From positions 124,001 to 188,000 of the IMG/VR virus record IMGVR_UViG_3300031576_000002: 64,000 nucleotides of DNA; one strand, given 5' to 3'. How positions within the stretch are numbered: the first letter of the stretch is position 1; each line of letters begins with the position of its first letter. Shown here piece after piece: positions 6,464 through 29,241 of this stretch. The notes under the pieces were generated by a model. That model saw nothing but the letters and a program-made list of their open reading frames with translations. It was not told the origin of the DNA and made no database searches. Made by a program: the position numbers and the translations under genes.

Positions 6464-7155
6464 ATTCCATACCGTTGTCGCAAGACTTCGACGGAATTAG
6501 GCTCCCAGTAGTCAATCGGGACATTCATTCCAAACGGGGTTTCGTACACTTCTTGGTGAGTCTCTCCTCCCCATTTTCTCCGGTAGTAGTCGGCACATGC
6601 GCCATAGTTCACCTTTACTCCACTCTTCATCGCGTGAGCATCGGTTTGGCAAGAAGCATTTACTTCGATTTTCGGCAGCATAAACTCGCAGCCTGCTCGG
6701 TGCGGATGGAGCTTTTGAATGTGCGCGCGACGCATGAAGTCTGTATCTTCAAAGTACGCAGGGTAGAAGTTCTCGTCAAAGAACCCTACCCGCTTGACCA
6801 TCTCACGCCCAATCCCTACTAGGTGCCAAGCCTGATTCGTGAGCAGCCCGAACGTGTTTGCGTGGTACTCCTGGAGTCGGACGACCTGGCTGAAGCCCAT
6901 GTTAAAAATGAGAGACGCGGATACTAGCCAGGTAATGTCTCGATCTTCACGAAGCCCGATGTTCCAGCTACGGCCTACTCCTAGATTTTCAGGGTAGGAG
7001 CGAACCTGGATGCCGCGAGCATGGTACTTGGCAGCAAATCCACTAGGACTGTTGTCAACCACGAGAACATTATCCGTTGGAATATCTAGCGTTTCCACAC
7101 AGCGATCGGTCACACTTTCTACAATGGCTGGAATGACAACAAGGTAGGTCCGCAT
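6460..7155 (-). CDS. GT2 family glycosyltransferase
   Basis: LVVDNS, ENLGVGRSWNIG, VGFFDENFYPAYFEDTDF. Confidence 0.85.
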   Translation of the reverse strand: MRTYLVVIPAIVESVTDRCVETLDIPTDNVLVVDNSPSGFAAKYHARGIQVRSYPENLGVGRSWNIGLREDRDITWLVSASLIFNMGFSQVVRLQEYHANTFGLLTNQAWHLVGIGREMVKRVGFFDENFYPAYFEDTDFMRRAHIQKLHPHRAGCEFMLPKIEVNASCQTDAHAMKSGVKVNYGACADYYRRKWGGETHQEVYETPFGMNVPIDYWEPNSVEVLRQRYGI

Positions 7156-7160
7156 GACTG

Positions 7161-7769
7161 TTACAACACCTCAAGAAGAGTGATACCACGTGGAGTCGGC
7201 AGGCGGAGTAGGTTCACGTCTCGCAACTCGGCAATCTTACCGTGCAAGTCTTTCCCATCCGGAAAGTGCGCGCCGGCTCCATGTAGCGGAGCCGTATCGT
7301 GAAAACAGGCGATGCTCCCCCTTCGCATAAAGGGCCGGTACCGCTCGAACTCGGGGACGCGCAGATGAAACGCAGAATCTGAAAAGAGTAGATCAACTTG
7401 CCCTGTAGGATTGTAGTCCATTGAACTTTGGACTACCACCTTGACAGGTAATCCGTGGCAACGGCCCGCGGCGTACCCCGCCCGAAAAGGATCGATCTCC
7501 AGTGCTACGCACTGTCCATGTGAATTTCTGGTAAGCGCTAGCCCGATCTCGCGGGTCGTCTGCCCCCAGGCAGCTCCTGCCTCGACACACAAGGCTGGCT
7601 GAAGTACCCGTACCAACCCCCCTATGAACTCGCTAACCTCCAATTCCGTAGAATCGGAATCAGTCGAGTGCCAGTTCTCAGGAAGGGGGCAAAGCAGCGA
7701 AGGCGCTGTAAAGCGCCGCTCCGAGGCCAGCTCTTGCGGAAAATACGGATCGTCGCTACTCATGTTCAA
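7161..7769 (-). CDS. Class I SAM methyltransferase (Methyltransf_24-like)
   Basis: CVEAGAAWG, VALEIDP, VDLLFSDS, IACFHDT. Confidence 0.75.
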   Translation of the reverse strand: MNMSSDDPYFPQELASERRFTAPSLLCPLPENWHSTDSDSTELEVSEFIGGLVRVLQPALCVEAGAAWGQTTREIGLALTRNSHGQCVALEIDPFRAGYAAGRCHGLPVKVVVQSSMDYNPTGQVDLLFSDSAFHLRVPEFERYRPFMRRGSIACFHDTAPLHGAGAHFPDGKDLHGKIAELRDVNLLRLPTPRGITLLEVL

Positions 7770-8275
7770 AATTCCTTCCTTACGGCCTCAAAGAGAGACT
7801 GCTCTTGCCACACCCCAAACTCCACAGCTTTCAGGTCCGTATCGTCAAACACAACATCTAATTCCGCGCGCGTCATGTGACTGACCCATCCGTTTTTTAC
7901 ACGGTCTTCAATGTTTCCGGACGCCACGGCGTACGAAAGCAAAATTCGAGGCGCCCACTTCGCGACTGTAGCAAGTGCATGCCGCGGACCGTATAAATAC
8001 TCCAGAATTCCGCTCATCACGGCAGTGTCCGCCTTGAGGCAAGGGGGCGACCCTCTGCTATCAAAATCGTAAAAAATGGGAGAAGTCTCCACACAGTCCA
8101 GAGGAAGGTACAGGCAGTCGGGACTGATTAGCCCCCGCAAGGCGCGACTTCCTGCACCTACATCGATTACGACCTCCCCCGGAACTATCCGAGCGGCCAT
8201 AATTTTTAAGCGCTCTTCCCACGGCGAAAAGTCTTGTTCGGCAAGGCGTTCCCAACGAGTACGGTCGGTCATCAC
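7766..8275 (-). CDS. Class I SAM-dependent methyltransferase
   Basis: VIDVGAGS, YLPLD, DTAVMSGILEYL. Confidence 0.75.
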   Translation of the reverse strand: MMTDRTRWERLAEQDFSPWEERLKIMAARIVPGEVVIDVGAGSRALRGLISPDCLYLPLDCVETSPIFYDFDSRGSPPCLKADTAVMSGILEYLYGPRHALATVAKWAPRILLSYAVASGNIEDRVKNGWVSHMTRAELDVVFDDTDLKAVEFGVWQEQSLFEAVRKEF

Positions 8276-9048
8276 AGATCTCGAAGTTCCGCAGGAAATG
8301 CTGCTAAGAGCCCATCCCGAATACTGCTAACGGCAGCCCTTTCCCTGGTGCGCGTCTGAACTACCAAAGACTCAGTAGAACTGTCCTCTGCCACCACTAT
8401 AGGGGTTGGAACTTCATCTTGGTACAGACTGCTGTAATCGTGAAACTTGAAAGTCCCTCCGGAGAGTTTGTCTGATAGTTTTGTCCAGCCATTTCTTACC
8501 CCGTAAGCGTCCGCTACGATAAGCCCGTGAAGACTGGAGGATAATACTGCTTGAGAGCTTTGAATGTCCCGCAAGACTTGTAGAACAGGCTGGCATGGAT
8601 CGATCACATGCACGTCCGGATTCCGCCGCAAAAACTTACAAAGTTCATCATCATTCATGTCTACATAGTGAGGCAAGATAGAAAGTTCGTACTTCACGCA
8701 CTGATCCCATGAGGTTGGGATTAGGTTTGCCAAAAGCGCAGGATCTCCGAGGGCGCTCGGGGTGGCCTGCGGAATGCGGCAACGGGTAAGTAGTCCTCGC
8801 ACGGCTCGCACTTTTGCATCTGACAGGCTGATTGCGCTCTCCTCGAACATAGCCCCTGTTCCCCATACGAACTGGGAGTAGGAAACGGGGATCTCAGACA
8901 AAATGCTACCCACCGAAATCAAGTCGGCCTCTTCCATCGTGTGCGCACGCTCGACGACTACTCCCAGGACTTCCTGCAAGATGAAAGGTGTCAGCTCGTC
9001 CCCGAAGTTACCATGTCGGTAGCCGCAGGTGCGCCAGTAGGCTTTCAA
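8272..9048 (-). CDS. Polysaccharide pyruvyltransferase family protein
   Basis: NFGDEL, VGSIL, VWGTG, AVRGLLT, LGDPALL, ILPHY, SSSLHGLIVADAYG. Confidence 0.9.
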   Translation of the reverse strand: MKAYWRTCGYRHGNFGDELTPFILQEVLGVVVERAHTMEEADLISVGSILSEIPVSYSQFVWGTGAMFEESAISLSDAKVRAVRGLLTRCRIPQATPSALGDPALLANLIPTSWDQCVKYELSILPHYVDMNDDELCKFLRRNPDVHVIDPCQPVLQVLRDIQSSQAVLSSSLHGLIVADAYGVRNGWTKLSDKLSGGTFKFHDYSSLYQDEVPTPIVVAEDSSTESLVVQTRTRERAAVSSIRDGLLAAFPAELRDL

Positions 9049-10928
9049 AGGAGTTCCGACCAGCCTTCGCGCAAAGCTACATGGCGCAGCATTTCTTGAA
9101 GGCGATTCGTGTAGGTACAGTTAGCTTTCACGAATTCGTGCGCGGCGTCGCGAATTCGTAAGCGCTCGTCTTCATGAGCCAAGTAGTAGTCAATCTTGGC
9201 CTTGAGTTCATCCCATTGATTGTAGCGGTAAAAGACAATGGTCTTACCGTCTTCAAACTCTTCCTGCATGCCTTCAATAAAAGGGTGAATAATGAATCCG
9301 CCCCGCCCAAGAGTCTCGTAGACTCGGTCGCTCGTGTAGCGAGGATGATTGAATCCAGGACATAGTGTATCCCCCACTATGATCTTCACGCTCGCATACA
9401 GTGCATTCAGATCCTCGTTGCGCACAGCCGGCTGCCCAGGCTTGGGCCAGTACCGAAACTGTGGTCCGTACCAAGCTGTCAGGTTCTGCTTGATCTTCTG
9501 CCGATAGGGCAGCCACTCCGGATGGTAGTCGTCTAGCGCCCCGACAAAACCGACATCCGCTGTAAACCTACTGTCTGGGGCAGCCTTGTAACACTCTGGC
9601 TGGAAAACTCCAGCCCGCATGTGAATATGGTTGATACCTGCCAGCCTGAACTGATCCTCTGAACCTCCATCAGCCGTAAAGACGAATTTCGTATTCCAGA
9701 ATGGATCGCCCACGATCGAGTTCTGACGAGCAATTCCCCAGTACAAGTCAAGATGGTAAGAAGCCGTTGGCACGCCGACCGCGTGAAGATCACGGAAGAG
9801 CTTGTTTCCGTCTCCCGCAAAACCCCACGTCCGGGTGTAAAGCAGTAACCGTGTTCCAGTCTCTCGAACTCGCTGCCAGATCGTAGCCGCATCCACTTTG
9901 TTCTCTTGCAGCCGGTGGACGCGGTGCCCCAGCGTTTCAAGAGTCTGAGCTACATGATTTTCGGTCGAGTGCCGAGGCTCAAAATTGCCGATATAGGAAA
10001 TGTCCAACTGTTTTCCTCTTCGCGAACAAACGGCATCCATGAATGCAGCCGTTTCCGCCAGACTGCGCTCGGCTGTACTGAATCTCTGCTGGATCTTCTG
10101 CGCGGCCTCCTGCATGTTTTCCACCTGCTGATTACGACTTCCAGGTCGGCAGTGGGCTATATAAAGCGCTTTGGAGACAGGTTGAATGTCAGCACCGTCA
10201 AACTCTGCCTTTAGCCATAGTGCCCAGTCTTCCAGCGCGGCGTAGTCATCAAACCCGCCTAGCCGTAGGAATTGCTCACGCCGTATCATCGCGCCTATAA
10301 CGATGTAGTTACCGCTTAGAAGTGGACGCTTGCCTGCAATAAAGGGAGCGCCCTTCTTGTTATGTACTACCTTAACCAGAGACGGGTACCGCACATCTCC
10401 AGGTCCCGCAAGCATCTGCTGAATATACGCAGAATCAAGCTCATCGTCTGCGTCCAAAAAGATAAGCCACGCCGAAGTTGCTGCTTCTGCCCCTTTGTTA
10501 CGGGCAGTCTGAATGTTACTAGAATGCACACGGATGATCTCGTTCGGCTTGCGCGTCTGATTCTGCGCCGACAGTACCGCTCGCCCCGCTATCGCATTCC
10601 AGGTCGGCTCGTGCCCGTACGCGGCGATGATGACGGCAACTGTCTCTTCCGTAGGAGCATCCAAGCGCGTCACGGTCACGCGCGTCGCTTCAGGGGCGAC
10701 AGGTGGAACCGCTCCAGGCCGTACAGGCGGGATGAACGGCAGGCGGCCTTTAGGCGCTGACTTCGCCACACCTACGGCGATATTCTGAGCAGACTTCGCG
10801 GCTACATGCGCTTGGCGATCCGCTAGCAGTGCGCGGATCCTCGCGGCCTTGGCAGCGACCGCAGGAGATACGCCTCTACGAGTAGGAATGACAACGCCGC
10901 GCCGCGCCACGATTAGCTTTCTGCCCAT
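9045..10928 (-). CDS. GT2 domain fused to CgeB/Glyco_trans_1_2-type glycosyltransferase
   Basis: ARNKGA..WLIFLDADD, GGFDDYAALEDWALW; C-domain DVGFVG, RNEDLNALYASVKI, SDRVYETLGRGGF; basic Ala-rich N-terminal extension. Confidence 0.85.
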   Translation of the reverse strand: MGRKLIVARRGVVIPTRRGVSPAVAAKAARIRALLADRQAHVAAKSAQNIAVGVAKSAPKGRLPFIPPVRPGAVPPVAPEATRVTVTRLDAPTEETVAVIIAAYGHEPTWNAIAGRAVLSAQNQTRKPNEIIRVHSSNIQTARNKGAEAATSAWLIFLDADDELDSAYIQQMLAGPGDVRYPSLVKVVHNKKGAPFIAGKRPLLSGNYIVIGAMIRREQFLRLGGFDDYAALEDWALWLKAEFDGADIQPVSKALYIAHCRPGSRNQQVENMQEAAQKIQQRFSTAERSLAETAAFMDAVCSRRGKQLDISYIGNFEPRHSTENHVAQTLETLGHRVHRLQENKVDAATIWQRVRETGTRLLLYTRTWGFAGDGNKLFRDLHAVGVPTASYHLDLYWGIARQNSIVGDPFWNTKFVFTADGGSEDQFRLAGINHIHMRAGVFQPECYKAAPDSRFTADVGFVGALDDYHPEWLPYRQKIKQNLTAWYGPQFRYWPKPGQPAVRNEDLNALYASVKIIVGDTLCPGFNHPRYTSDRVYETLGRGGFIIHPFIEGMQEEFEDGKTIVFYRYNQWDELKAKIDYYLAHEDERLRIRDAAHEFVKANCTYTNRLQEMLRHVALREGWSELL

Positions 10929-11371: not shown

Positions 11372-11473
11372 TCAAAGCAAGTTGTTAACGGCGTAGGCGA
11401 CACCAGAATGGAGCGAACTGGGCAGGCTGTCAAGCTCAAACCACCCCCAGTCATCATTTTTCTTTTTCTGCAT
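11372..11473 (-). pseudogene. Displaced second copy of the Nudix gene 3' end (33-aa mini-ORF)
   Basis: MQKKKNDDWGWFELDSLPSSLHSGVAYAVNNLL vs Nudix C-terminus NSEWGWFSPEALPSPVHPNVKALL (N, WGWF, LPS, H, V shared); ATG overlaps the HNH stop (TGATG). Confidence 0.8.
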
Positions 11474-12033
11474 CAACCCGTCTGCTTCAATTTTAACGCT
11501 CTGTACCTAGCTCTTTGCCTTTGCTTAGCCTTTTCCCGAAATTCTGCACGGGTCTTGTACCATCGGTTTTTCTTATCTCTATCCCACTTTCTTACTTTTT
11601 CACGATACGCAGAATCTGTTAAAAACTTCTCTTTACGATCTGTACGAACTCTAGCGTTCCAGCAAGCAATGCAAGCTCTTCCGCCACTAACTGCGCGCAC
11701 ATTAGACCCTTCAAGCCTGTGCAAACCTTTCAAGCACATATTATTTAAGTGCGCTATAATAAAAGGATTCCTCCCTCGGTGACAATTTTCTCTCGGAGTT
11801 ACCGGCTCTAAGTGCTGCGGGTTTACGCATGCTGGAACTCGGCATAAATGGTCTATTTGAAGATTTACTGGAATCGGTCCCACCTGGACGGTGTAAGAGT
11901 AACGGTGTGCCCACACTGCTGTACCGTTTACAGAAGTTTTTCCGTAACCCTTTACATTAGTAGGACCTTTCCATAGCCAGCATCCGTCCGATTTCCGGAC
12001 CCTCGCCCAAAACCTTTCTTCCGATTCTGTCAT
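11473..12033 (-). CDS. Free-standing HNH homing endonuclease
   Basis: CWLWKG..GYG, AHRYSY..GPIP..IDHLCRVPACVNPQHLEPVTPREN; AT-richer than flanks. Confidence 0.92.
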   Translation of the reverse strand: MTESEERFWARVRKSDGCWLWKGPTNVKGYGKTSVNGTAVWAHRYSYTVQVGPIPVNLQIDHLCRVPACVNPQHLEPVTPRENCHRGRNPFIIAHLNNMCLKGLHRLEGSNVRAVSGGRACIACWNARVRTDRKEKFLTDSAYREKVRKWDRDKKNRWYKTRAEFREKAKQRQRARYRALKLKQTG

Positions 12034-12500
12034 AAGAGCGCTTTTACATTTGGGTGCACAGGAGATGGCAAAGCCTCTGGACTAAACCACCCCCACTCAG
12101 AATTTTCCCAGTTTAGTGCTACATTGCGCGACATCGCTTCCGCAGCGCCTTCTTCCACTTCGACCAGATAAGTAGTGTATGCGAAACCGCCGGAACGATA
12201 TACCGTCTCGCCCGCTCTATGCACTTCTGGCAGCCCGCCAAGCTCTTCCTCCGCTTCTGAAATTGCGCCTGCCCACTCGCTCTCACCAGGTTCTACTCTC
12301 CCGCCGGGAATGCCCCAGAGCCCTGGATCCATCACGTCTTGCGAGCGCTTCACGAGCAGGATTCTACCATCGCCTCGCCGGATCAAAAGTCCGGCTGCGC
12401 GCTTGCCCCACCGCACACGACCTTCCTCGTCACGAGAAAGCTCGCCGCCTTCATCGCGCGGAGCGCCCCACTTGCGTAGAATGGCGACTACTGGCGACAT
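12030..12500 (-). CDS. Nudix hydrolase
   Basis: Nudix box GGRVEPGESEWAGAISEAEEELG (RE replaced by SE); ILLVKRS..GLWGIPGG. Confidence 0.9.
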   Translation of the reverse strand: MSPVVAILRKWGAPRDEGGELSRDEEGRVRWGKRAAGLLIRRGDGRILLVKRSQDVMDPGLWGIPGGRVEPGESEWAGAISEAEEELGGLPEVHRAGETVYRSGGFAYTTYLVEVEEGAAEAMSRNVALNWENSEWGWFSPEALPSPVHPNVKALL

Positions 12501-13486
12501 GCCTGTCTCACCAAGAACCTGCCTGTCCGATCTCCAATCGTGAGCGTCTCTTCCTTGAATCCGTAGGACTTAGCCAAGTTTTTGTAGTAGATCGTGACTT
12601 TGTTTGCGTCCAGAGTAGGATCCCGCTGCCGCAGCGTCTCTTCCGTGTGGATCGCAACTCGATCAATTCCTTTCGATCTCGCCCACTGAAGCAGCGTCGC
12701 CATGCCTTCTTCAGCCCAGTCTGCAAAAAGTGAGAGCGCGTACCGCTTCATCTTGTCCAGCTCTTCGATCGTCAACCCTCTTCGCTCGAACTCGGCCTTG
12801 GTCGCTCCGAACCGCCACGGCTCCACCTTCTCCAGCACTTGCTCTCGGACCTTCACGTTCTCAATGCTCTCGACGAATTCCTCGTACGTCTCGTGCGTCA
12901 AGATCGTCTTGGCCTGATCGAACGCTGTGAATACGTCGCCCTGGATTTCGTCTACCAGGAGAAGATCGTTACTGACCTTGTCCAGCCGGATCCAGCCAAC
13001 AGTCTTCTCTCTAACCGGATGCTTGGAGTAATGGCTACCCTTGTAGATCACGTCAAGGAATTCCTCGAACTCTTCGTACTTGGCGACTAGCTCATCAAGA
13101 TGCGCGGAACGATTGATCTGCATGACGATCTGCTTCGCATCCCGGTAGCTAGTCTCGGGATCGTGATACTTGCCGTAGGATACTTCGTACCTTCCCGGCT
13201 CCAGGTGCTCTAGGTAGGCTTCAATATCTTCGCGCTTCACAACAGGCTGGTTTTTTCTCAGATCTGTGAGCTGCTGTGTATACCTCTGCGAGATGCTCTG
13301 GAACTTGCGCTGGAACTCCCGCCAAGGAAGTTGGTCGAGGTTTTCCCGCTCGTACACTCCAAGAACGTAGCGCAGAGAATCTTCCAGCCGGGAGAGCGTC
13401 TGCTGGGGAACGTCTTGGCCCCGGCGCTTGAGCCTAGTTGGAGTGCTCCCGCCTAAGCATTGAATGGCTTTACGCAATCGTTCCAT
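12488..13486 (-). CDS. Hypothetical protein with GNAT-like DEIQ(S/G)D module (start revised to ATG 13486)
   Basis: HPVREKTVGWIRLD..LVDEIQGD..LLQWARSKGIDRVAI..YYKNL..YGF; homologous to two modules of the 1156-aa ORF. Confidence 0.7.
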   Translation of the reverse strand: MERLRKAIQCLGGSTPTRLKRRGQDVPQQTLSRLEDSLRYVLGVYERENLDQLPWREFQRKFQSISQRYTQQLTDLRKNQPVVKREDIEAYLEHLEPGRYEVSYGKYHDPETSYRDAKQIVMQINRSAHLDELVAKYEEFEEFLDVIYKGSHYSKHPVREKTVGWIRLDKVSNDLLLVDEIQGDVFTAFDQAKTILTHETYEEFVESIENVKVREQVLEKVEPWRFGATKAEFERRGLTIEELDKMKRYALSLFADWAEEGMATLLQWARSKGIDRVAIHTEETLRQRDPTLDANKVTIYYKNLAKSYGFKEETLTIGDRTGRFLVRQACRQ

Positions 13487-13487
13487 A

Positions 13488-13823
13488 TCAGTAAACCGTA
13501 TCTCTTTCTGCGCGGCGGTATTGCGATTCCCAAGAAGTCGCCCAGATGTCGTACACATTCCTGTGACAGTGCGGATGGATCCAGGCGTACTGCAAAGTTT
13601 TTGTGTGCGGCTTTCTACAGATCAAGCAGTTAACGACTTTGGGGAAAGCACGAGGTTTCAGGGGTTTCTTGAAATTCCGCGCAATGCTCTGCGCGACCTT
13701 ACGAGCAGCTCTCTTGCGGCACGTCCTCGTACAACGCTTAACGGCAAAGCCTGCCTTGAACTTCTTCCCGCACATATCGCACACCTTCGTGTAGAGCGGG
13801 CGCTTCTTTTTCATCGGCGTCAC
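13488..13823 (-). CDS. Basic Cys-rich zinc-finger-like protein
   Basis: CDMCGKKF..CTRTC and CLIC..HPHC. Confidence 0.6.
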   Translation of the reverse strand: MTPMKKKRPLYTKVCDMCGKKFKAGFAVKRCTRTCRKRAARKVAQSIARNFKKPLKPRAFPKVVNCLICRKPHTKTLQYAWIHPHCHRNVYDIWATSWESQYRRAERDTVY

Positions 13824-13906
13824 TTTAGAGCGCGCAGCAGCGGACTGTCAGAACCGTCTTTGGCCTTTAGCGCGTAGTCTGGGTCGCAGTAAAAGGAGTA
13901 GTTCAC
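13820..13906 (-). pseudogene. Displaced second copy of the glycoside hydrolase 3' end (28-aa mini-ORF)
   Basis: (V)NYSFYCDPDYALKAKDGSDSPLLRALK vs GH C-terminus GYGLVGGADGDSQLLAELR; GTG overlaps the HNH stop and TGA overlaps the next start. Confidence 0.6.
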
Positions 13907-14493
13907 TTCTCCGAGAGTTTAAGCAGTCTACGCTTTTTCTTGTTTTTAACGGCAATAAATAGCTTATTATTTTCATAGTAGAGCTTAGAGGCGGCTCTTG
14001 CCTTTTCCCGGTAGACAGGGTCTTTAGCGTACCTCTCGCACTTTCTCGCGGCACTAGCCTGCAACCAGGCGTCCGTGCTTTTCTCGATCCGATCGCGCTC
14101 TGTACGACAGGCAATACAGGTCCTACGGCCTTGGTACCAGTATACGTTAGCACCTTCTAGCGCGTGCATACCTTTTTTACAGATATTGGTACGGTGTACA
14201 ATAGCCGAGGGGGCTTTCCCGCGCCCTATATTCTCTGCCTGTGTACACACCTGAAGATGATCTGGATTCACGCAGTCCCTCCGACCACAAACCATGTGAT
14301 CTATTACTAAGCCCGGTGGAATAGGCCCCATGAACATTTCCCACGCTACTCGATGCGCTCCAACCGGCCTGCCATTCTTAGAAAACTTTCCGTAACCTAA
14401 AGCCTTAGACCCGCTCCACAGAAGACAGCCTTCTTCGGACTCCTGGATATAACTCAAGAAGCGTTCTGCAAAGTTAGTAAGCCGTGGAGCCAT
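13903..14493 (-). CDS. Free-standing HNH homing endonuclease
   Basis: GCLLWSG..GYGKF, AHRVAW..GPIP..IDHMVCGRRDCVNPDHLQVCTQAEN. Confidence 0.92.
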   Translation of the reverse strand: MAPRLTNFAERFLSYIQESEEGCLLWSGSKALGYGKFSKNGRPVGAHRVAWEMFMGPIPPGLVIDHMVCGRRDCVNPDHLQVCTQAENIGRGKAPSAIVHRTNICKKGMHALEGANVYWYQGRRTCIACRTERDRIEKSTDAWLQASAARKCERYAKDPVYREKARAASKLYYENNKLFIAVKNKKKRRLLKLSEK

Positions 14494-14515
14494 TTATACC
14501 GTCCGGAGCAGCCGA

Positions 14516-15391
14516 TTAGGGCGCCCTACTCGTAGCTCTAAGCTCAGCTAAAAGTTGAGAATCACCGTCTGCTCCGCCTACAAGTCCGTAGCCGTTTTCT
14601 TCACGCCAGGCATACCACGTCCACAAATCCACTTTCACGCCCAGCCGTGCCCACACGGCGGGCGTCTGCCGGAAGTAGTCGAGATGCTCGTTGCGCTTCG
14701 GACGGCCAAATTCGGTCACCCAGACTTGTTTGCCCTTCTTCCACACATCGTCCACCAGCTCGGCAACCGCAGGCACCCTTTCCCATGAGTCCCCGTACAC
14801 ATGCAGCCCGAACACATCTACCAGGTCAAGACCTCCTCTTTTCACAAACTCTTCATTCAGCCGTAACTTTCCTTCATAGGTCGGTGGAAGCGTTGCCGCA
14901 GAAACGAGTAGTTTCCCCGGCGAGCGCCTGCGTATCTCAGGAGAGATCACACGCAACCAGTCTAGGTACTCCCCAAGTGACCAGCATAAAAATCCTGCCG
15001 CACAGTTGTCTACTTCGTTTTCAAGTTCCCACCCTATCACCCGGCTGTCGTCGCGAAATTTGTCCACCAGTGTAAGATCTGTAGAGGATGTAAGGATCAA
15101 CAAGAATCTGGCATTCAGTGGAGAGTTTTTTACCAGTCTTTCTACGAAACTCTCTGTATCTTTTGGAACTTGCATGCGAATCATCGAAGCGACTGCCATG
15201 ATAGCTGGAACATCTTCTGGTAGGGCTCCACTAGGGTGCAGGTGAATCCCCCGCTGCTTGTAGCTCAGCAGCGGCTGCTCGTCCGGGGGCACGAGAATAT
15301 CCGCAAGCTCAGCACAAGAAGCTGTCAGCGCAAGCGCGGTCAACAGAGATAGGAAGCGCTGCAAGGATCGGCCTTTCGGGTAAGTTGACAT
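14516..15391 (-). CDS. Clan GH-A glycoside hydrolase, predicted lipoprotein
   Basis: Lipobox-like LALTASC; acid/base WELENEV; FGLHVY; nucleophile VWVTEFG. Confidence 0.82.
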   Translation of the reverse strand: MSTYPKGRSLQRFLSLLTALALTASCAELADILVPPDEQPLLSYKQRGIHLHPSGALPEDVPAIMAVASMIRMQVPKDTESFVERLVKNSPLNARFLLILTSSTDLTLVDKFRDDSRVIGWELENEVDNCAAGFLCWSLGEYLDWLRVISPEIRRRSPGKLLVSAATLPPTYEGKLRLNEEFVKRGGLDLVDVFGLHVYGDSWERVPAVAELVDDVWKKGKQVWVTEFGRPKRNEHLDYFRQTPAVWARLGVKVDLWTWYAWREENGYGLVGGADGDSQLLAELRATSRAP

Positions 15392-15403
15392 TTTCAGGAT
15401 TCT

Positions 15404-15411
15404 TACTATAC
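15404..15411 (-). promoter_or_regulatory. GTATAGTA -10-like box
   Basis: Upstream of the GH gene; one of at least 8 copies. Confidence 0.6.
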
Positions 15412-15532
15412 TACTCTCGTGGAACTAGATCCAGAAGTTCTCCAGGAGATCGCTGAGCGCGCTGCTCGAATCTCTAGTCGTGCTCGGTCCATCAATGCCC
15501 GTCTCACTCAGGTAAACGCCAAGGTGGAGGCG

Positions 15533-15721
15533 CTAGCCCTCAAAGCCTCGGTACGTCGTGATAACCTTGAGCACCTCCTCGACGTTCGAGACTCGAAGGT
15601 CGATCCGCTCAAGGTCCGCGTCTAGCGTCCTCAAGACGCTCAAGACGTTGCTCAAGTCGTCCTCACTTACCGGCGCATCTACGGCAGTCAGCAGGCTCAG
15701 GACTGCTTGGATCTCTTTCAT
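15533..15721 (-). CDS. Small coiled-coil hypothetical protein
   Basis: 62-aa heptad-like ORF coupled (ATGA) to the upstream stop. Confidence 0.5.
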   Translation of the reverse strand: MKEIQAVLSLLTAVDAPVSEDDLSNVLSVLRTLDADLERIDLRVSNVEEVLKVITTYRGFEG

Positions 15722-16186
15722 CGTCGCTCCCAGCCGGGCCGATACACTACGTTGATCTGGCTCGCTTCAATCTTGCCAATGTAGATTGCAGAGTAGGCTC
15801 CGGTTTCATCATCAATGGCAGAGTTCCAAGATACTCCCGCCGCCTTTACCTGTTCAAGTATCTGCTCCCCGTTAAGGATTAAAAAATCTCGAATATCGTA
15901 TTGGGGCTCCTCTTCCCCAAAGACCTTCTCCCAGAGCGCAGAACCGCCCACGTTAAAATCTGGAATAAGCCGAGTAGCGTCTACTTCAACTTCAAGTACG
16001 GCAGCGTCCTTACCCCCCCGCACTAGAATACGCTCTAGCCCAGTGTTCGGCAGCATCCGGGTCGTCTACAAGAAACGGGTAGTACAGTCCTTTTTCTAGT
16101 TTCTCGTCGAGGAACTCTTCTCTGACGCCGTGATAGAGCGTAACCGTTCCGGCCAGGAGCTTGATGGATTGGCGGAGAGCACTCAT
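15718..16186 (-). pseudogene. ADP-ribosyltransferase-like gene split by a +1 frameshift at a G7 run
   Basis: VTLYHG..L..GL..PFLVDDPDAAEHWA..AGG(stop) continues as KDAAVLEVEVDATRLIPD in the +1 frame; run at 16013-16019. Confidence 0.55.
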
Positions 16187-16194
16187 ACACTGGC

Positions 16195-19100
16195 TCACCA
16201 GATCCGGGTTTCTATCCCGCTCGGCACGACCAAGAATGCGCGGAAGGGAGGACGCCCAATGCGGGCAGCCAAACGAGAAATCTTACTAGCAATCTTCTTC
16301 TGCCAGATACGGTACGTGTGCTCTTGCTCCTCTTCGTCACCACGCGGAACGAACGAAATCTCTCCCGGCTGGAATCCCATCTGCTGCGGCAGCTTCTCGT
16401 AGTAGCGCCGCACCTTTCTACTCTTTGGCATTCCACCCTCGGAGAGAAGGCCGCCGCGCGTAATGCGCAAAGTATCGTCCGTAGCAAGGTAGAGCATCTT
16501 GACGCCCTTCTCCCTTGCGGCCTCAGCAACGGCTTGAATGAGTGCGTACTCCCACTGCCCCAGCACTTTCTCGATCTGAGGCTTGACCTTGCGGTACATC
16601 GCACTAGGATCGGCTACATCTTGCCCCTTCTCCCAAAGTGTAGGCCAGCCTTTCGGCAAGTCCCTTGAATCATCTGCGACACCGGCTAGCACCTCGTCGA
16701 GCTTCAAAAACTGCTCGTACACATCCGACTGAATCTCGTCCACAAACCATTCCGTATCCGAGAGTGGGTCTATTCTCGCCCAGCCGATCGTCTCTTGACT
16801 CCGCACGGGATGACCCGCGTAAGTGCCCTCTTTCAGCAGGTACTCCATGACTTTCCGAGCAGGTGGCGTCATGCCCTCCAACATCTCTTCTGTCATGTCC
16901 AGGCGGAGAACGGTCTGCCTGACGTTCCTAGATCGCTGGAGTCCGGTCCAGCCCTTGTAAGAAACATCGAACGTATTGCCGGAGCTATCCAGGTAGGCTT
17001 GGATCGACTGCGTGGTGACGTTGTTGCCTTTGACAATACGATCTTTGAAAGACCAGTTCTCAATCCATGGATAGCGCTTCTTGATCTCCCGGAATGGAAT
17101 CGCACCGCCTGCCACTTCTACCTCTTTGAGAAGGGTGCGGAGGAATTCTTTTCCGGGGACGTACTCCACTTTTGAAGATGCTGCACCTGCACCGCCTATG
17201 GTCGCGGGCAGGAATGGATGCTTGCTCCTTAAACTGTTGTACTCCTCTTCTATGTGCTCTACGACATCGTCGAGTCCTGGCGCCAAAGCTGCGGATGAGT
17301 CCAAGATAGCGTGAGCCGCTGTAAGCAGCGGCGGAAGCGTGTCAAAGTGCTCGCATAGACTGCGCAGCTTCTCGTATTTCACGGGGAGTACATCGCCCAA
17401 TTCCTCGTCTAGCTGTTCCAGCAGTGATTCGACAGCAAAATCATGAGCCAACCCTCTGAGCCAGTCGCCCTGGCTGTCGCGTATGAACTTTTCTAGGTCC
17501 TCGTCACTGGCATAGTCGCCAATAAAAGCCGGCCATTCATTGCTGAATTCCTTGACCCAGTCAACATTGTAGCCTTTCGATAACCACTCCATCGTGCTGA
17601 CAACGCCGTAATTAGCGATCTCCTCCTGAAGCGACTCTCCTTCTAAAAAGTTAGCCTTCGCAGAAGGATCCAGTTTACCAAAAACTTTTTCTACGTCATC
17701 GGCGCTCACACGATTCTTAGCGAAGAGGTACTCGTAGAATCCCTCTAGCGCTCTTGCGTCTTCGGCCAGACTGTTATTTTCCGCGTACGTCTTATAGTCA
17801 GACTCGTCCATGTCTTCTACACGGCTCCGCACTTCCTGTTCAAAGTTGTCCTCTACAAGATCCTCGCTCGGATCCTCCATTCTGTACTTGCCCGGCTCTT
17901 CTTGGCAGAAAAGATCATAAAGATAGTCGTGGACTTCCGCGACAAAAGCTTGCTGGCGACGAGTCTCTTCCTGCTGCAAGCGCTCCTGCTCCGCAGGATT
18001 AAGCGGAATCAGTTCCAGTTGCCGCGAATCCGTCGGTATAAGGGGCTCGTACACAGGCGGCTGAAGATCTTCCTGCCCAAGAATGCCAAGCGCTGTCTTC
18101 AAGCGACTGGCGCCTTTACGGGCGCCCAAATCTTTCACCCACAAGTCCGCGTACACTTCCCCGTACAATTTGATCGGGTCTTCAATTTTCTTGAAGCCCT
18201 CTTCTGCGGGCAGCTTCTCGTAGAAGCGCTCCAGCGTCTCGTCTGATGCGCCGCCCCACCGATTCGCCTGGATCTCTGCATTCGTCCAGATCAGATAGCG
18301 AATGTTGTTACGCCGTGCAGCATCCTCCAAGTAATCAATAACCATATCGGTCCAGTCGGAGAATCGGTTAATCAGCGCATTTACAATCCGGTGGACTTTC
18401 TGCTTGCTCAGTTTGTAATCCACCGCCAACTTGCCAATCACTTCTTTATCGAGGTAGCGGTAGATGCTGCGCATGAAATCGCTTTGAATGTTCTCCACCA
18501 CCCACGCCTTGCCAGATTCCCCCACGCTCGGAACAGCAATCCACTCGGGTTCACCATCGATGCGGATGTAGGCAATGGCTTCGCCGTAGTGACCTGGCAA
18601 ACTTTGGCCGTACAGCTTTCGCGCCAGCACCCATCCCGGTTCGCCCGCAATCTGTTTTCCGTCTGCGACAACTGCATTCCAGATTTCATCGGTAGGGTAG
18701 AACGCAAACGTATAGGGCACGTCTGATATTGTAGCGCCCTTGTACTCCTTCTCGCCGCGCTCGACATGAAATGTCATCGGATCTAGGCGCGCTACCGCTT
18801 CCTGAAGCTCGGCTACGGTCGCCTCTGTTCCAATCCGTGCGATAATGTCGCGCCGGATGTAACCCGGCACGTTGCGGAGCAAAGCCTCGATGTCACTCTG
18901 GATGAGCTGTTCATCGGGAGTCCGGCCCTCAAGCTGCTTCTCTACTTCTTGCACACTACGCGGAAGGTGGTCGGCGCTACCGGCATGGTCAATGTCTATT
19001 TCTTCAATTCTTGCTTCTTCTGCCTCATCGCGCTTCTCTTGCGCGATCTCCATGAAACGCTCAAGAGTGGGAATGCCGCGGTTGGAGTAGCCTTGCGCCA

Positions 19101-19665
19101 AATTCATTACCACCCCAGCATCTGCACTGACTATCCAATTATGTTGACTATTAGCTAGAAACTCCTCTCCTAGTGCGTACATGGGATCAGCGTCCGGCCA
19201 GTCTACCCCGTTCCACCATTCCTCTTTCCACGCCCGCAAGCTATCAAATAGCAGGACGTCGATTTTCGCCTGATCCAGACTGGGCAGCACAACCTTCAAA
19301 GCTGCTTCAAGTTCATCGCCGTCAAACTTACTGCTTACGGGGTCTGCCTCTTCAAGAGCATTCCCCGCTTCCTCGCCATGATCTTTTCGGACAATGTCTA
19401 CCGCTGACGACCAAATATCTTTCCCGCCGTCAATGCTTGGACGGTCCTCATCATTCCAATACTCCCATACGTCAAACTCGACATCGGTGCGTCCTACGAC
19501 TACATCAGGAACAAGGTAACGTCCGTAGCGAGCGTCCGCCCCATGGTCCAAGTTCCAGATCGCCTCGTGGGGGAAGAGTTCCTCGATCGCTGCTACAACG
19601 TCTTCGCTACGAATCCCAGGCATTGGACCCTCGACGCAAAAAATCGGACACGGCATCTGCCGCAT
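16195..19665 (-). CDS. Large acidic multidomain (polyvalent-like) protein with two GNAT-like DEIQSD modules
   Basis: 1156 aa; YIRIDG..VVENIQSD..AARRNNIRYL..FYEKLP..GF and WARID..VDEIQSD..AAREKGVKMLYL..YYEKLP..GF. Confidence 0.8.
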   Translation of the reverse strand: MRQMPCPIFCVEGPMPGIRSEDVVAAIEELFPHEAIWNLDHGADARYGRYLVPDVVVGRTDVEFDVWEYWNDEDRPSIDGGKDIWSSAVDIVRKDHGEEAGNALEEADPVSSKFDGDELEAALKVVLPSLDQAKIDVLLFDSLRAWKEEWWNGVDWPDADPMYALGEEFLANSQHNWIVSADAGVVMNLAQGYSNRGIPTLERFMEIAQEKRDEAEEARIEEIDIDHAGSADHLPRSVQEVEKQLEGRTPDEQLIQSDIEALLRNVPGYIRRDIIARIGTEATVAELQEAVARLDPMTFHVERGEKEYKGATISDVPYTFAFYPTDEIWNAVVADGKQIAGEPGWVLARKLYGQSLPGHYGEAIAYIRIDGEPEWIAVPSVGESGKAWVVENIQSDFMRSIYRYLDKEVIGKLAVDYKLSKQKVHRIVNALINRFSDWTDMVIDYLEDAARRNNIRYLIWTNAEIQANRWGGASDETLERFYEKLPAEEGFKKIEDPIKLYGEVYADLWVKDLGARKGASRLKTALGILGQEDLQPPVYEPLIPTDSRQLELIPLNPAEQERLQQEETRRQQAFVAEVHDYLYDLFCQEEPGKYRMEDPSEDLVEDNFEQEVRSRVEDMDESDYKTYAENNSLAEDARALEGFYEYLFAKNRVSADDVEKVFGKLDPSAKANFLEGESLQEEIANYGVVSTMEWLSKGYNVDWVKEFSNEWPAFIGDYASDEDLEKFIRDSQGDWLRGLAHDFAVESLLEQLDEELGDVLPVKYEKLRSLCEHFDTLPPLLTAAHAILDSSAALAPGLDDVVEHIEEEYNSLRSKHPFLPATIGGAGAASSKVEYVPGKEFLRTLLKEVEVAGGAIPFREIKKRYPWIENWSFKDRIVKGNNVTTQSIQAYLDSSGNTFDVSYKGWTGLQRSRNVRQTVLRLDMTEEMLEGMTPPARKVMEYLLKEGTYAGHPVRSQETIGWARIDPLSDTEWFVDEIQSDVYEQFLKLDEVLAGVADDSRDLPKGWPTLWEKGQDVADPSAMYRKVKPQIEKVLGQWEYALIQAVAEAAREKGVKMLYLATDDTLRITRGGLLSEGGMPKSRKVRRYYEKLPQQMGFQPGEISFVPRGDEEEQEHTYRIWQKKIASKISRLAARIGRPPFRAFLVVPSGIETRIW

Positions 19666-19695: not shown

Positions 19696-20403
19696 CTAAG
19701 TCGGGTTGGACTCGAAGGGAGCTTCTTCGGTCTCGGCTGCGTGAACAGCCTGCTGGAGCCTCTGAAGCAGGGTCGAGCCATTCGGCAACTTCTGGAGAAC
19801 AGCTTCTACTTCTCGACGTAGATCCGAATTCGGCTGGCGTAGCTCTGGATTGTGCAGGATCAACTGGATGGCGTCGGCCTGGTCCTTGACCCTCTTCGAG
19901 TCAAGCTTATAGCCCAGCAAGAGCCCCAGAGAGGGCACGAGAAGCTCCGTACCATGCACGGCCGTACGCGCGGACTCACCGCTCATCGCTGCATCGAGCT
20001 TGTCAGGATGGAACACCACTAGCTCGATTACAACGCCTTCCTTGGCGTGCCGCAACTTCACGGGATCCAGGTTACCGCCCTCCCCCGTGACTCGGTCGAA
20101 CCCGTACTTCTTGGAGAGCGCCATGATTGGAGTGAGCGCGTTGTAGTCCACGGCAAAGTCAATATCCTTCGTCGCTCGCGTATAGTTGTAGACGTGCAGC
20201 GCATTGGATCCGATCAAGACGAACTCAACTCCGGCAGCGTTCAAGAGTTTGACGGCATCCTTCATCGCTGCTGCGAAGTTGCCGCCCGCTCGGATATGGA
20301 GTCGTTGGAAAGACTCGCGGAGAAAGGTCGAGTTGAGCGCCATCACCTCATCGAGAGAGGCGGTGGGTGCCAAGCGATTCGCCAAGTTCTTGAGCCGTTC
20401 CAT
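19696..20403 (-). CDS. Nucleotidyltransferase (AbiEii/DUF6036-like)
   Basis: VEFVLIGSNAL..TRATKDIDFAV; GYKLDSKRVKDQAD. Confidence 0.8.
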   Translation of the reverse strand: MERLKNLANRLAPTASLDEVMALNSTFLRESFQRLHIRAGGNFAAAMKDAVKLLNAAGVEFVLIGSNALHVYNYTRATKDIDFAVDYNALTPIMALSKKYGFDRVTGEGGNLDPVKLRHAKEGVVIELVVFHPDKLDAAMSGESARTAVHGTELLVPSLGLLLGYKLDSKRVKDQADAIQLILHNPELRQPNSDLRREVEAVLQKLPNGSTLLQRLQQAVHAAETEEAPFESNPT

Positions 20404-22695: not shown

Positions 22696-23914
22696 GACTG
22701 CTTAAGCCGCCACTTGCATAGCAGGTAAGCAGCCTTCTCGTTTCACAGAGGAACTTACAAGCGTATCCTCTCCACGAAGGGATAGCAGAGCCCGGTTTAA
22801 GACGTTTTTAGCCGCGTTGACATCTCTATCAAGGACCAAGCCACAAGCAGAGCAGATATGGACTCTTTCACTCAAACTCTTCTTCACAGTCATTCCACAT
22901 CCGCTGCACTCTTGGCTGGTGCCTCTGGGATTGACTTTTACCACTATCCTACCAGCTTCTTCCGCTTTGTAGGACAGCATGTGGAGCAACATCCCCATTC
23001 CAACATCTTTGAAGCTACGCCTGAATCCACGGCTGAGACCCTGGCTCATACCTTTCAGGTTCAAGTCTTCCACCGCAATCAGATCATACTCTTTGACCAA
23101 AGACTTAGACACTCCATCAAGAATATGCTTCCGAGTTCTTGTAACTTTCTGCCAAGCCTTAGCCAGTACCTTGACGGCTTTCCTTCTACGCTTAGATCCC
23201 TTCTGTCTCCTGGATACCGTTCTTTGAGCATGCTTGAGCTTCTTCTCGTTCTTGGCGTAAACACGTTGCCGCTCAATCAAGATGCCGTCTGAGGTAGCGA
23301 CTAGAGCTTGCATGCCTAGATCAATGCCAATGACTTTGCCAGTCTTGAGAAGAGGAGCTGGAAGCGGTAGCTCACAGGATAAGACGGCGTACCAGCCGTC
23401 AGCTTCTCTTTTGACTGTGACCTCTTTAACCTTGGCATCAGGCGGAAGCTCCCGATAAGGATTCCAGCGGAAGTGTCCCAGCTTGGAAAGATGTAGCTTT
23501 TTGCTGTCAAACTTGAAACCTGACTGATTGTATGTGAAGGAGTCGTACCGATCCCTACTCTTGAATCTGGGAAAGCCTGGCTTCTCTCCACGCTTGACTC
23601 TTCTGAAGAAAGCCTTGTACGTTTTGTCCAGTTTTTGAAGGACTGGGTGAAGAACTCTTGAATAGATCGTGTCATAGCCTTCTACCTGCTTTGAAACATA
23701 CTTAAGCTCTAGGCACTGATCGTAGAAGCTGAGAGTTCTATTATGCTGCTTCCACTCCAGGATTCGTTGTTCCAAAGCACAGTTGTAGAGGAAGCGGCAG
23801 AAATCCAGAAGCCGCTGGAGATTGATCTCCTGGGCCTTGGTAGGTTGGAGGCGGAACTTGTAGGAACGGCGCACGGCTAGAGTGTATCACAAGGGAGTTA
23901 AGGAATCACGCATG
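22689..23914 (-). mobile_element. tnpB-only cassette with terminal inverted repeats and 10-bp TSD (copy 1, 1226 bp)
   Basis: TIRs CATGCGTGATTCCTTAA / CATGCATGACTGCTTAA (14/17); flanks TAGTAGTCAG (22679-22688) and TAGTAGTTAG (23915-23924). Confidence 0.88.
22702..23874 (-). CDS. tnpB: RNA-guided endonuclease TnpB (390 aa)
   Basis: YKFRLQPT HTH; GIDLG, AVEDL, DRDVNAAKN RuvC residues intact; CSGCG/CSACG zinc finger. Confidence 0.95.
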   Translation of the reverse strand: MRRSYKFRLQPTKAQEINLQRLLDFCRFLYNCALEQRILEWKQHNRTLSFYDQCLELKYVSKQVEGYDTIYSRVLHPVLQKLDKTYKAFFRRVKRGEKPGFPRFKSRDRYDSFTYNQSGFKFDSKKLHLSKLGHFRWNPYRELPPDAKVKEVTVKREADGWYAVLSCELPLPAPLLKTGKVIGIDLGMQALVATSDGILIERQRVYAKNEKKLKHAQRTVSRRQKGSKRRRKAVKVLAKAWQKVTRTRKHILDGVSKSLVKEYDLIAVEDLNLKGMSQGLSRGFRRSFKDVGMGMLLHMLSYKAEEAGRIVVKVNPRGTSQECSGCGMTVKKSLSERVHICSACGLVLDRDVNAAKNVLNRALLSLRGEDTLVSSSVKREGCLPAMQVAA

Positions 23915-23938: not shown

Positions 23939-24406
23939 ATGAGTCAACCAGTAAAAAAAATCTCACACCGCTTCACTTGGAGCGACATCATCCGGGAGTC
24001 GGCATGGGCACAGTGGATTCGTATGACTCGGCCGCCAGGCTCGCGAATAACGCATACTCCGTGGGGGTGCATCCTCTCCGACATTCCTTCTGCCCAGCAG
24101 AAAATTGAAGCTCGAAAACTGCGCCGGGCTTACGAGTCTTGGATCGCCCAGGATGAAGAGCGTGCTCGTGACGCAGAGTTGTTCCGATTCTGGACCGCCG
24201 TGTTCCCTCCGCATCGCTTGCTCGTAGAGGTCACCGAAGCTTACGCGGCCGGCTTGCCGTACAAGAATATCCTCCGCGAGTACCGGCTACGGTTCAAAGT
24301 TCAGCCTCTCGGCTGGGCAAAGTGGGAAGCATTTGTTCGAGATCCGGAATCCGGCGGCGGAGTTCTCGTTCCATTCCGGGGTAGCCAAGAAGGAACGTCA
24401 CGATAG
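23939..24406 (+). CDS. Hypothetical protein (rare plus-strand gene)
   Basis: About 155 aa with protein-like composition; overlaps the minus-strand neighbour, so uncertain. Confidence 0.4.
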   Translation: MSQPVKKISHRFTWSDIIRESAWAQWIRMTRPPGSRITHTPWGCILSDIPSAQQKIEARKLRRAYESWIAQDEERARDAELFRFWTAVFPPHRLLVEVTEAYAAGLPYKNILREYRLRFKVQPLGWAKWEAFVRDPESGGGVLVPFRGSQEGTSR

Positions 24407-25499
24407 CGTCTGGACTCTGAAGTACCACGTCTCTCCAAGAGAGCGGGTACTTGGAGTAGGTGAGCTTGATCCCCAGCTCTTCAAAGTTCAATCCAAGCGC
24501 TGGACCGAATTTACGAAACCGGGAAGGAAACTTTCCTATCTCCTCTTCAGGGATGTGCCCTTTGACGTCAAAAGCGAGCGATACGATCACTTCGCTATCC
24601 CTGAGACGGTACATGCCCACGGGTCCGCCAGAGGGCTTGAAAATGATGGATTCTTGATCGAACCAGTTTCCCAGCTCCACCGCATCACGCCACTCCACCC
24701 CTTCTACTAGAATCGACCGCTCCCGCTCAGCGTAGAATCCGTAGACTGGCGTCCAGGAGTACCCTCGACGTTCAAGCTCTGAAGTCAACTCTCCGTGGCG
24801 ACGCCGGTTCTCGGCCCTCGACCTGTTTTCCTTTTCAGTGCGCTCCTCGATCTCCCGATCCCGCCAACGGATCCTCTCCGGTCGCGGAGAGGTCTGAAAC
24901 TCCTTCTCTCGGTCACGCTGTCTCTCCCACTGTTCCGGTACCTTTGGATCGAACTTCACGGCTCTGGGGTCGGGGCGGTAAGCAGACAGAACCGTGTAGG
25001 CTGCGCCCGGCCGCTGAAGGTACTCCAGATCCGTCACGCTAATCCCCAGCAAAGCTATCGCCCGTCCGAGAATGCCGGCCTGCACCTTGGGCACGTTAGA
25101 CCGCCATCCCGATCCGGGCGGCTTCTCGCGCGGATCTTTGCTGACAACCATCTCCTCCCAGAATTCCCTTACGCCAGGGCCTAGCAGTTGCCGCATCGGT
25201 CGCACGGCTTCCATGGGAACGGTTGGATAGATGCCGTCCCCACCAAGCTGACCGCTGAGAAGATCAACTTCGACTCCACCCGGCAATAGATTCCAGTTGT
25301 GGACTTGCCCGTCTGGGAGACGGCCATAGGCGATCTTGCCGCCTAGCTCTTGCTGCACGGCAAAGGCCACAGCAAGCGAATCCTTGGCCGTCGCTCCTTG
25401 GCTGTGAACGAGGCGCTGTACCTCTTGAAGTAGCGGCACAAAGTCGGCTGGAACTTCTCGCCCCTGCCCCAGCAGACTCAGAGCCCTGGCAAGAATCAT
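24294..25499 (-). CDS. YunG-like plus DUF3293-like fusion protein
   Basis: LAVAFAVQQELGG..HNWN.LP.G.EVDL..Q (YunG-like); VLSAY..ENRRRHGEL..L..GY...E.SILV..A.ELG..F.QESI (DUF3293-like). Confidence 0.65.
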   Translation of the reverse strand: MILARALSLLGQGREVPADFVPLLQEVQRLVHSQGATAKDSLAVAFAVQQELGGKIAYGRLPDGQVHNWNLLPGGVEVDLLSGQLGGDGIYPTVPMEAVRPMRQLLGPGVREFWEEMVVSKDPREKPPGSGWRSNVPKVQAGILGRAIALLGISVTDLEYLQRPGAAYTVLSAYRPDPRAVKFDPKVPEQWERQRDREKEFQTSPRPERIRWRDREIEERTEKENRSRAENRRRHGELTSELERRGYSWTPVYGFYAERERSILVEGVEWRDAVELGNWFDQESIIFKPSGGPVGMYRLRDSEVIVSLAFDVKGHIPEEEIGKFPSRFRKFGPALGLNFEELGIKLTYSKYPLSWRDVVLQSPDAIVTFLLGYPGMERELRRRIPDLEQMLPTLPSREAEL

Positions 25500-25521
25500 C
25501 ACGTCTCCCGAAAAGCCACGC

Positions 25522-29216: not shown

Positions 29217-29241
29217 ACAACCGCATTCAAAAAATTTCCGG

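Follow-up and report, generated by a model that had tools for sequence, protein, structure and literature searches.

A GNAT-fold domain family of uncultivated tailed phages with a replaced cofactor loop, present in three copies in two genes of a jumbo-phage-sized genome

Introduction

What is a protein module that recurs three times in two genes of an uncultivated virus, and what might it do there? The modules in question lie in one long minus-strand gene run within bases 124001-188000 of the viral record IMGVR_UViG_3300031576_000002 (this 64-kb stretch is referred to below as the window, with positions counted from its first base), one of them in gene P0001 and two in gene P0002. The record is a single sequence of 205,227 bases, classed as linear by IMG/VR and with a CheckV completeness estimate of 85%, and hence represents a jumbo-phage-sized genome from a metagenome. 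A first-pass annotation, made from the letters of the sequence, described the modules as divergent relatives of the GCN5-related N-acetyltransferases (GNATs) and proposed that they are injected acyltransferase-like effectors expanded by duplication. Here we report that the modules belong to a large, unnamed GNAT-fold domain family of uncultivated tailed phages, whose members occur either as solo proteins or as parts of polyvalent proteins.

Polyvalent proteins are a presumed multi-tool that phages and plasmids bring into the cell, and many of their domains are still unnamed. They have been described as virion-embedded and are predicted to be injected (PMC5512222, PMC9503650), and Iyer et al. 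2017 recognized among their domains two RimI-like GNAT families, one of which adjoins ART domains (PMC5512222). Host RNA polymerase is a target of acetylation by other phage GNATs, Rac for example (PMC7824862). Mom of phage Mu has a GNAT fold with an atypical insertion and carries out a Gly-tRNA-dependent modification of DNA adenine (PMC13219725, PMC7261163).

Results

P0001 and P0002 hold three copies of one module

P0001 (12488-13558, minus strand) is the solo form of the module, with 356 residues from its first ATG, or 332 if the Met at 13486 is taken as the start, as it is in the first-pass annotation and by other gene callers. Its copy, module 1, matches the full family profile at 12500-13345 (P0001 residues ~72-353; E 2.5e-69 on the genome). 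P0002 (16195-19665, minus strand; 1156 residues) holds the other two, namely the divergent module 2 (18127-18822; residues ~282-513) and module 3 (16294-17109; residues ~853-1124), which is complete, having GHP, W-x-R-x-D and DEIQSD as well as the N-terminal helical sub-domain. When the whole 205-kb record was searched in six frames, exactly these three places matched the family profile. The remainder of P0002, residues 1-285 and 520-850, had no detectable relatives in a word search, within that method's length limits. Downstream of the gene at 19696-20403 there is a strong terminator-like hairpin (19669-19644, minus strand), with a stem of 11 pairs, 7 of which are G-C, and a T-run behind it. 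Since the initial ATG of the long P0002 frame falls inside this hairpin, translation probably begins at 19623, which yields a 1142-residue product and agrees with another gene caller.

The claim that two genes share three modules could be examined with a profile from which the window's own proteins were left out to avoid circularity. This independent profile, made of 135 homologous modules from other sources, matched P0001 73-343 with 218 bits (E 9e-63), P0002 853-1115, i.e., module 3, with 155 bits (E 1e-43), and P0002 385-494, i.e., module 2, with 62 bits (E 3e-15), all at a nominal Z of 1e6. Translating the window in all six frames gave only three occurrences of the pattern [DE][EN]IQ[SG]D, all of them within modules. 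Modules 1 and 3 were also aligned directly by BLASTP (P0001 77-344 with P0002 856-1108, E 4e-13), and this alignment includes the helical region (PWREF/PFREI, IEAYL/IQAYL) that the first-pass annotation had noticed upstream of both. Its spacing of four to seven residues between the conserved His and the following Trp or Tyr has to be corrected, as the actual values are 8, 6 and 9 in modules 1, 2 and 3. When modules were aligned in five rows, S, R-x-D, Q-x-D, W, A-R, Y and G-F came out invariant; module 2 was weaker in pairwise comparison, yet aligned at R-x-D, Q-x-D, W, A-R, Y and G-F. It has GHY for GHP, Y for W, VENIQSD (E to N) and N for G after alpha3, and is probably catalytically impaired.

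A resemblance by chance or shared composition is next to inconceivable here: it is refuted by the independent-profile E-values (3e-15 to 9e-63), by the 688 related representatives and by the two confident models of the same topology, all described in this section or below.

The module belongs to a large family found solo and in polyvalent proteins

An exhaustive profile search of 1.84 billion cluster representatives (clusters at 50% identity) returned 688 proteins at E<=1e-3, of which 365 reached <=1e-10 and 46 reached <=1e-30; as these are cluster representatives, the family comprises at least 688 clusters. A word-based search had returned only two relatives of P0001. Pfam, PHROGs and NCBIfam gave no match for the whole proteins, for parts of them, or for any of 138 family members.

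Members take one of two forms, a solo protein of ~270-350 residues or a segment of a protein of 1000-3089 residues. As read from ~30 architectures, the partners in the large proteins are ART-PolyVal, classic GNAT (Acetyltransf_1), 2H phosphoesterase, NUDIX and SprT-like domains, together with M91 peptidase, Tpt1/PARP-like and LRV/HEAT segments, while the module itself is covered by no Pfam model in these partner-bearing proteins. Homologues of 2839-3089 residues combine 2H, ART-PolyVal, SprT, GNAT and NUDIX domains and fit the definition of polyvalent proteins, and in BFVD, relatives from uncultured Caudovirales go by the name 'large polyvalent protein associated domain-containing protein'. 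The connection that the first-pass annotation had drawn to phage polyvalent proteins is thus supported at the level of the family. P0002 itself consists of two modules and two relative-less regions, with no recognized polyvalent hallmark domain. Its two-copy design is not unique, since several family proteins hold two or three copies in one polypeptide (P0002, P0048, P0056, P0062, P0098 and P0110).

Classic GNATs occur elsewhere in the same polypeptides as the module in P0010, P0012, P0013, L006, L011 and L015. On a metagenomic contig, the solo module gene P0109 is followed 10 nucleotides on by a gene for a 273-residue protein with weak classic-GNAT matches (L022:1083-1904, plus strand), a gene pair that echoes the pairing of module and classic GNAT within the giant proteins.

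Close relatives were located on twelve IMG/VR contigs of 28-314 kb. No match to three family members was found by tblastn among 50,697 GenBank phage records, nor any DNA similarity to the locus by blastn in the same records, and 185,579 species genomes, scanned for patterns from two sub-family alignments, yielded no relative. The surroundings of the modules differ from phage to phage: 13 neighbouring or non-module segments of the window had no relative in the 12 related viral loci, gene neighbourhood around the relatives is not conserved, and the genes upstream of solo modules are mutually unrelated. The relatives' neighbours include SAM-lyase-like (S-adenosylmethionine lyase-like), mCpol, SLT, Peptidase_C92 and classic GNAT genes, which are typical early or conflict genes.

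Predicted structures place the module in the GNAT fold

The AlphaFold2 model of P0001 60-356, computed from the family alignment, had a mean pLDDT (predicted local distance difference test) of 95.1 and a pTM (predicted template modelling score) of 0.85. It presents the architecture that characterizes the module, a helical sub-domain of ~60 residues followed by the GNAT core. Residues 1-62 of the model form the small helical sub-domain (window 13196-13381, minus strand; P0001 60-121), which contains PWREF and IEAYL and is conserved across the family, and residues 63-297 form an alpha/beta domain (12491-13195, minus strand; P0001 122-356), which superposes on known GNATs with Z 9.8-9.9 over 114-122 residues. 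The model of module 2 was less confident (pLDDT 83.9, pTM 0.80) and has the same order of elements.

Using the structural aligner VIA, we compared module 1 with 48,161 PDB representatives, and the top 50 matches were all GNAT-fold chains; the best was 3lod_A (Z 9.8, root-mean-square deviation (rmsd) 3.4, 122 of 145 residues aligned). When VIA was applied to Foldseek's best 1000 chains, 112 reached Z>=8, headed by human GCN5 (Z 9.9), RimI, Elp3 and Ard1. Foldseek on its own found nothing in the PDB at E<=1e-3 for module 1, and its weak matches were all GNATs. In the ESM Atlas, the Atlas model and the AlphaFold2 model both led to classic GNAT clusters, with a TM-score of ~0.6 over ~120 residues. 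For module 2 the top 50 VIA matches were again all GNAT folds (best Z 8.8), the tRNA-acetylating toxins AtaT and TacT among them. The GNAT fold is defined as a mixed alpha/beta domain with a seven-stranded sheet and helices alpha1-alpha4, in which beta4 and beta5 run into alpha3 and alpha4, and the alignments of the two models to such folds span 114-138 residues. With uniform match lists, near-whole domain coverage, and two models and three libraries in agreement, the predicted structures make the assignment secure at the level of the fold, as the first-pass annotation had supposed.

These comparisons also bear on the alternative that the first-pass annotation had named as an example of a refuting fold, a PD-(D/E)xK-type nuclease in which R-x-D ... 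D-E-x-Q would be a metal site. A superficial D ... (D/E)-x-Q resemblance on two neighbouring strands is all that speaks for it. No nuclease-fold chain appeared in the top 50 of either model, neither Pfam nor PHROGs gave a nuclease match, and all top matches were GNATs with 114-138 residues aligned; we thus reject this alternative on its fold and regard it as scarcely credible.

At the level of sequence the kinship is far harder to see. Sequence searches of the PDB gave only matches at chance level, plus the GNAT YsnE at E 0.18; the weak alignment with YsnE covers alpha3-beta5 and is the sole detectable sequence echo of GNATs.

Conserved residues suggest an active site

Over 138 modules the mean column identity is 20%, and against this background H180, Q206, D208 and Y325 (P0001 numbering) are invariant, while P181, W189, R191, E204, W281, A293, G297, G333 and F334 are conserved in >=90% of the modules. 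The family signature begins with S-G-H-P ... G-W-x-R-x-D ... (D/E)-E-x-Q-S-D and, after an insert of 24-109 residues, continues with W ... A-(K/R)-x-x-G ... H-(S/T)-x-E ... Y ... G-F. In module 1 the strand beta4 ends in DEIQGD (12935-12952, minus strand; P0001 203-208). Judged by their pattern in the alignment, the conserved residues fit an active site.

In Gcn5, RimI and TacT/AtaT, an acid on a core strand is the general base and a Tyr on alpha4 is the general acid. Their counterparts in the module, by sequence and model topology only, would be a near-invariant Glu on beta4 and an invariant Tyr on alpha4; an invariant His, Gln and Asp lie close by in the sequence. We favour the reading that modules 1 and 3 are active acyl-transfer enzymes that would modify a host molecule early in infection. 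Three elements would make up their catalytic centre: the GHP histidine and the alpha4 tyrosine, both invariant, and the terminus of beta4 with its (D/E)-E-x-Q-S-D. The acceptor would most likely be a protein amine, given the GCN5/RimI/Naa-like structural neighbours and the company of ART domains. Module 2, which is degenerate through four changes (E to N, P to Y, W to Y, G to N), would act as a partner for structure or binding, in the manner of tandem GNATs. The enzyme-like conservation of the His, Gln, Asp and Tyr supports this reading, as does the conflict context of the fusion partners and neighbouring genes.

The same conservation bears on a different proposal, in which the module is a non-catalytic GNAT-fold scaffold for binding or assembly that no longer binds a cofactor, comparable to antizyme or to the inactive half of a tandem GNAT. 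The cofactor motif is indeed missing, several copies per polypeptide are common, and enzymatically inactive GNAT-fold proteins such as antizyme figure among the structural matches (at rank 49). However, in sequences that are only ~20% identical, His, Gln, Asp and Tyr stay invariant, and Arg, Glu and Trp nearly so, which is how an active site and not a scaffold is conserved; module 2 alone departs from this. We therefore consider a scaffold a poor explanation for the family; a purely structural role appears unlikely for modules 1 and 3 and plausible for module 2.

A helical insert takes the place of the cofactor loop

The module departs from standard GNATs most clearly where these bind the pyrophosphate of coenzyme A (CoA). 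The first-pass annotation had failed to see the classic R/Q-x-x-G-x-G motif in the three copies, and the corresponding Q/RxxGxG/A loop is absent in 138 of the 138 members examined. Instead, beta4 ends in Q-S-D, one to five extra helices follow, and a near-invariant Trp then starts alpha3. This beta4-alpha3 insert varies from 24 to 109 residues across the family; in module 1 it consists of five helices (12719-12937, minus strand; P0001 208-280), located where a standard GNAT has its CoA pyrophosphate loop. Aligned with YsnE, the module's Trp coincides with the loop Gly. Two further differences are topological: DSSP assigned two strands before alpha1-alpha2 and two after, versus one and three in a standard GNAT, and the invariant Tyr lies eight residues before G-F, versus four. 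Because the GNAT fold here comes without the defining cofactor motif, we describe the module as one that works like a GNAT and do not file it in the acyl-CoA N-acyltransferase families.

In the reading that we favour, the donor would probably be acyl-CoA, held in an unusual way given that a helical insert and a conserved Trp stand where the pyrophosphate loop would be. The replacement of this loop in every member also speaks for a donor other than CoA, either an acyl or aminoacyl group from a charged tRNA, like Mom, FemX and L/F-transferase, or acyl carrier protein-bound acyl (acyl-ACP), with a host protein, nucleic acid or nucleotide as acceptor. FemX and L/F-transferase use charged tRNA. Mom offers a parallel, being a phage GNAT fold with an atypical insertion, Gly-tRNA as its donor and likewise essential His, Trp, Arg and Tyr (PMC13219725).

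Further points in favour of such a donor are the presence of the tRNA-acetylating toxins AtaT and TacT among the structural neighbours of module 2 and the basic character of about half of the family's modules (pI >8), although the distribution of pI is bimodal and does not discriminate between targets, and window modules 1 and 2 are acidic. Of note, an alanyl-tRNA-synthetase catalytic-core-like gene (L014:6897-7817, plus strand; E 3e-22) lies directly upstream of a solo module on a 125-kb viral contig; its 306-residue product matches only the start of the class II alanyl-tRNA synthetase core (tRNA-synt_2c). This neighbour is, however, a single case, with no counterpart in the other loci or in the window's genome. 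Moreover, the best structural matches are all CoA-dependent, with Mom, Fem and L/F-transferase outside the top 50, and no sequence similarity to the Mom, FemX or L/F-transferase families was found. On balance, a non-CoA donor, the chief rival to our reading, seems to us unlikely.

Several observations weigh against the reading of modules 1 and 3 as CoA-dependent enzymes delivered by the phage. Besides the missing loop, there is no profile similarity to the Pfam GNAT families (no Pfam match for P0001 or P0002 up to E = 1), hhalign gave a probability of only 0.4% between the family and the classic GNATs found alongside it in polyvalent proteins, and Z values of 9-10 are only moderately above this aligner's background. 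As for delivery, no ART-PolyVal, MuF or recognizable virion genes adjoin P0001 or P0002 in the window's phage, and profiles for terminase, sheath, MuF and HK97 capsid had no match in the 205-kb record, so that packaging is unsupported here. A search of the record for ART-PolyVal likewise gave no match, but its control was silent everywhere as well, making that result uninformative. Because the virion-gene profiles found nothing, packaging into the virion and injection are suggested only through analogy with the polyvalent-protein literature.

Taken together, a GNAT-fold family of polyvalent-protein domains, with nothing claimed about catalysis, is very well supported by these results. Catalysis, donor, target and delivery with the virion are what we infer beyond it, and the favoured statement as a whole, CoA-dependent catalysis included, is in our judgement somewhat more probable than its negation.

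Duplication within a gene is plausible for at most two of the three copies

The first-pass annotation had attributed the three copies to expansion by duplication, which is at best half right, because module 1 is closer to the modules of other phages (39-44% identity) than to modules 2 and 3 (16-23%). In the phylogeny it lies within a well-supported clade of 40 sequences that excludes both. Holding modules 2 and 3 together changed the likelihood by +34 units (p-AU, the approximately unbiased test, 0.80), a result to be read with care because both are long branches; by this comparison of sequences, the two plausibly stem from an old duplication inside the gene. A tree with all three modules as one clade had a log-likelihood 30.7 lower and was not rejected (p-AU 0.24).

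Genes around the modules

P0001 shares its last 13 nucleotides with the start of a NUDIX hydrolase gene (12030-12500, minus strand), an overlap that makes co-translation of the two genes probable. A NUDIX domain is also fused to the module in the giant homologue P0008. The P0001-NUDIX pair is flanked by two paralogous HNH endonuclease genes (11473-12033 and 13903-14493, both on the minus strand), which are 42% identical, belong to phrog_826 and resemble homing endonucleases. On two related contigs, L020 and L021, a small HNH-motif protein, not NUDIX, is encoded downstream of the module gene.

Just upstream of P0002, a 235-residue gene (19696-20403, minus strand) matches DUF6036 (nucleotidyltransferase) only weakly and below threshold (E 6e-4). 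At 22702-23874 (minus strand) lies a 390-residue gene with a phrog_506 'transposase' match (E 2.6e-106), a TnpB/IS605-like candidate, in a stretch of lower G+C content (0.50 versus ~0.55-0.59 nearby). The gene at 24294-25571 (minus strand) encodes a 425-residue protein with DUF3293, S-AdoMet-lyase-like and YunG-like matches; on contig L019, a SAM-lyase-like gene lies directly upstream of a module-bearing protein of 1617 residues, and SAM-lyase-like genes near modules may indicate an anti-restriction context. A glycosyltransferase gene cluster (3064-10928, minus strand) encodes, among others, a 627-residue two-domain protein (GT2 and Glyco_trans_1_2) and a 573-residue protein with an RXYLT1_C-like domain, and may serve DNA or surface glycosylation. 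The sole tRNA gene found in the window is a tRNA-Lys with anticodon TTT (29240-29315, minus strand).

Discussion

The module shares its core fold with GCN5/PCAF, RimI, Ard1/Naa and the Elp3 acetyltransferase domain (PDB 5trm, 2cnm, 5isv, 4pv6 and 5l7j), and with small bacterial GNATs (3lod, 1y9k and 1yx0). About 115-122 residues superpose on these classic GNATs (Z 8.9-9.9, rmsd 3.1-3.8), and the alpha3-beta5 segment and the Y...GF tail on alpha4 look similar. The extra N-terminal helical sub-domain, the missing Q/RxxGxG/A loop and the want of profile similarity set the module apart from them.

Compared with the GNATs described by Iyer et al., the module has the same kind of carriers, namely polyvalent proteins with ART-PolyVal domains, as well as the fold of the superfamily and a presumed role in the early modification of host molecules. 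Those GNATs, unlike the module, are recognized by Pfam Acetyltransf_1 and carry R-G-x-G-x-G.

Tandem-GNAT enzymes with one inactive half are known, such as MshD, N-myristoyltransferase and 2wpw of the clavulanate pathway, which is among the structural matches of the modules. P0002 resembles them in having two copies, one of them with a degenerate motif, but its copies are 330 residues apart, with a relative-less region between them.

Mom, likewise encoded by a phage, combines a GNAT fold and an atypical helical insertion with a non-CoA donor, and thereby demonstrates that phage GNAT folds can leave acyl-CoA chemistry. The similarity has its limits: Mom's insertion lies late in the fold (residues ~175-209 of ~230), unlike the module's beta4-alpha3 insert; Mom is a late, DNA-protecting enzyme and not a polyvalent-protein domain; and there is neither a sequence match between Mom and the module nor a Mom structure named among the top structural matches. 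A broader possibility is that the family constitutes a new class of GNAT-fold enzyme, with the loop replaced by a variable helical insert and either a donor other than acyl-CoA, such as the charged tRNA of Mom, or a new mode of holding the cofactor. Such enzymes would be delivered by the phage, solo or in polyvalent proteins, and their target would be a component of host defence or gene expression. We regard this as doubtful at present.

In sum, this work describes a widespread, unannotated GNAT-fold family with a replaced cofactor loop, and thereby provides one of the many unnamed domains of polyvalent proteins with a fold and with conserved residues that are candidates for an active site. 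If the module is merely an odd acetyltransferase, this is a useful annotation and no surprise. If it is an active transferase, a host-modifying activity comparable to Rac would be added to the early-infection repertoire of phages, and if its donor is not acyl-CoA, the family would broaden the range of reactions known for the GNAT fold, following the recent example of Mom.

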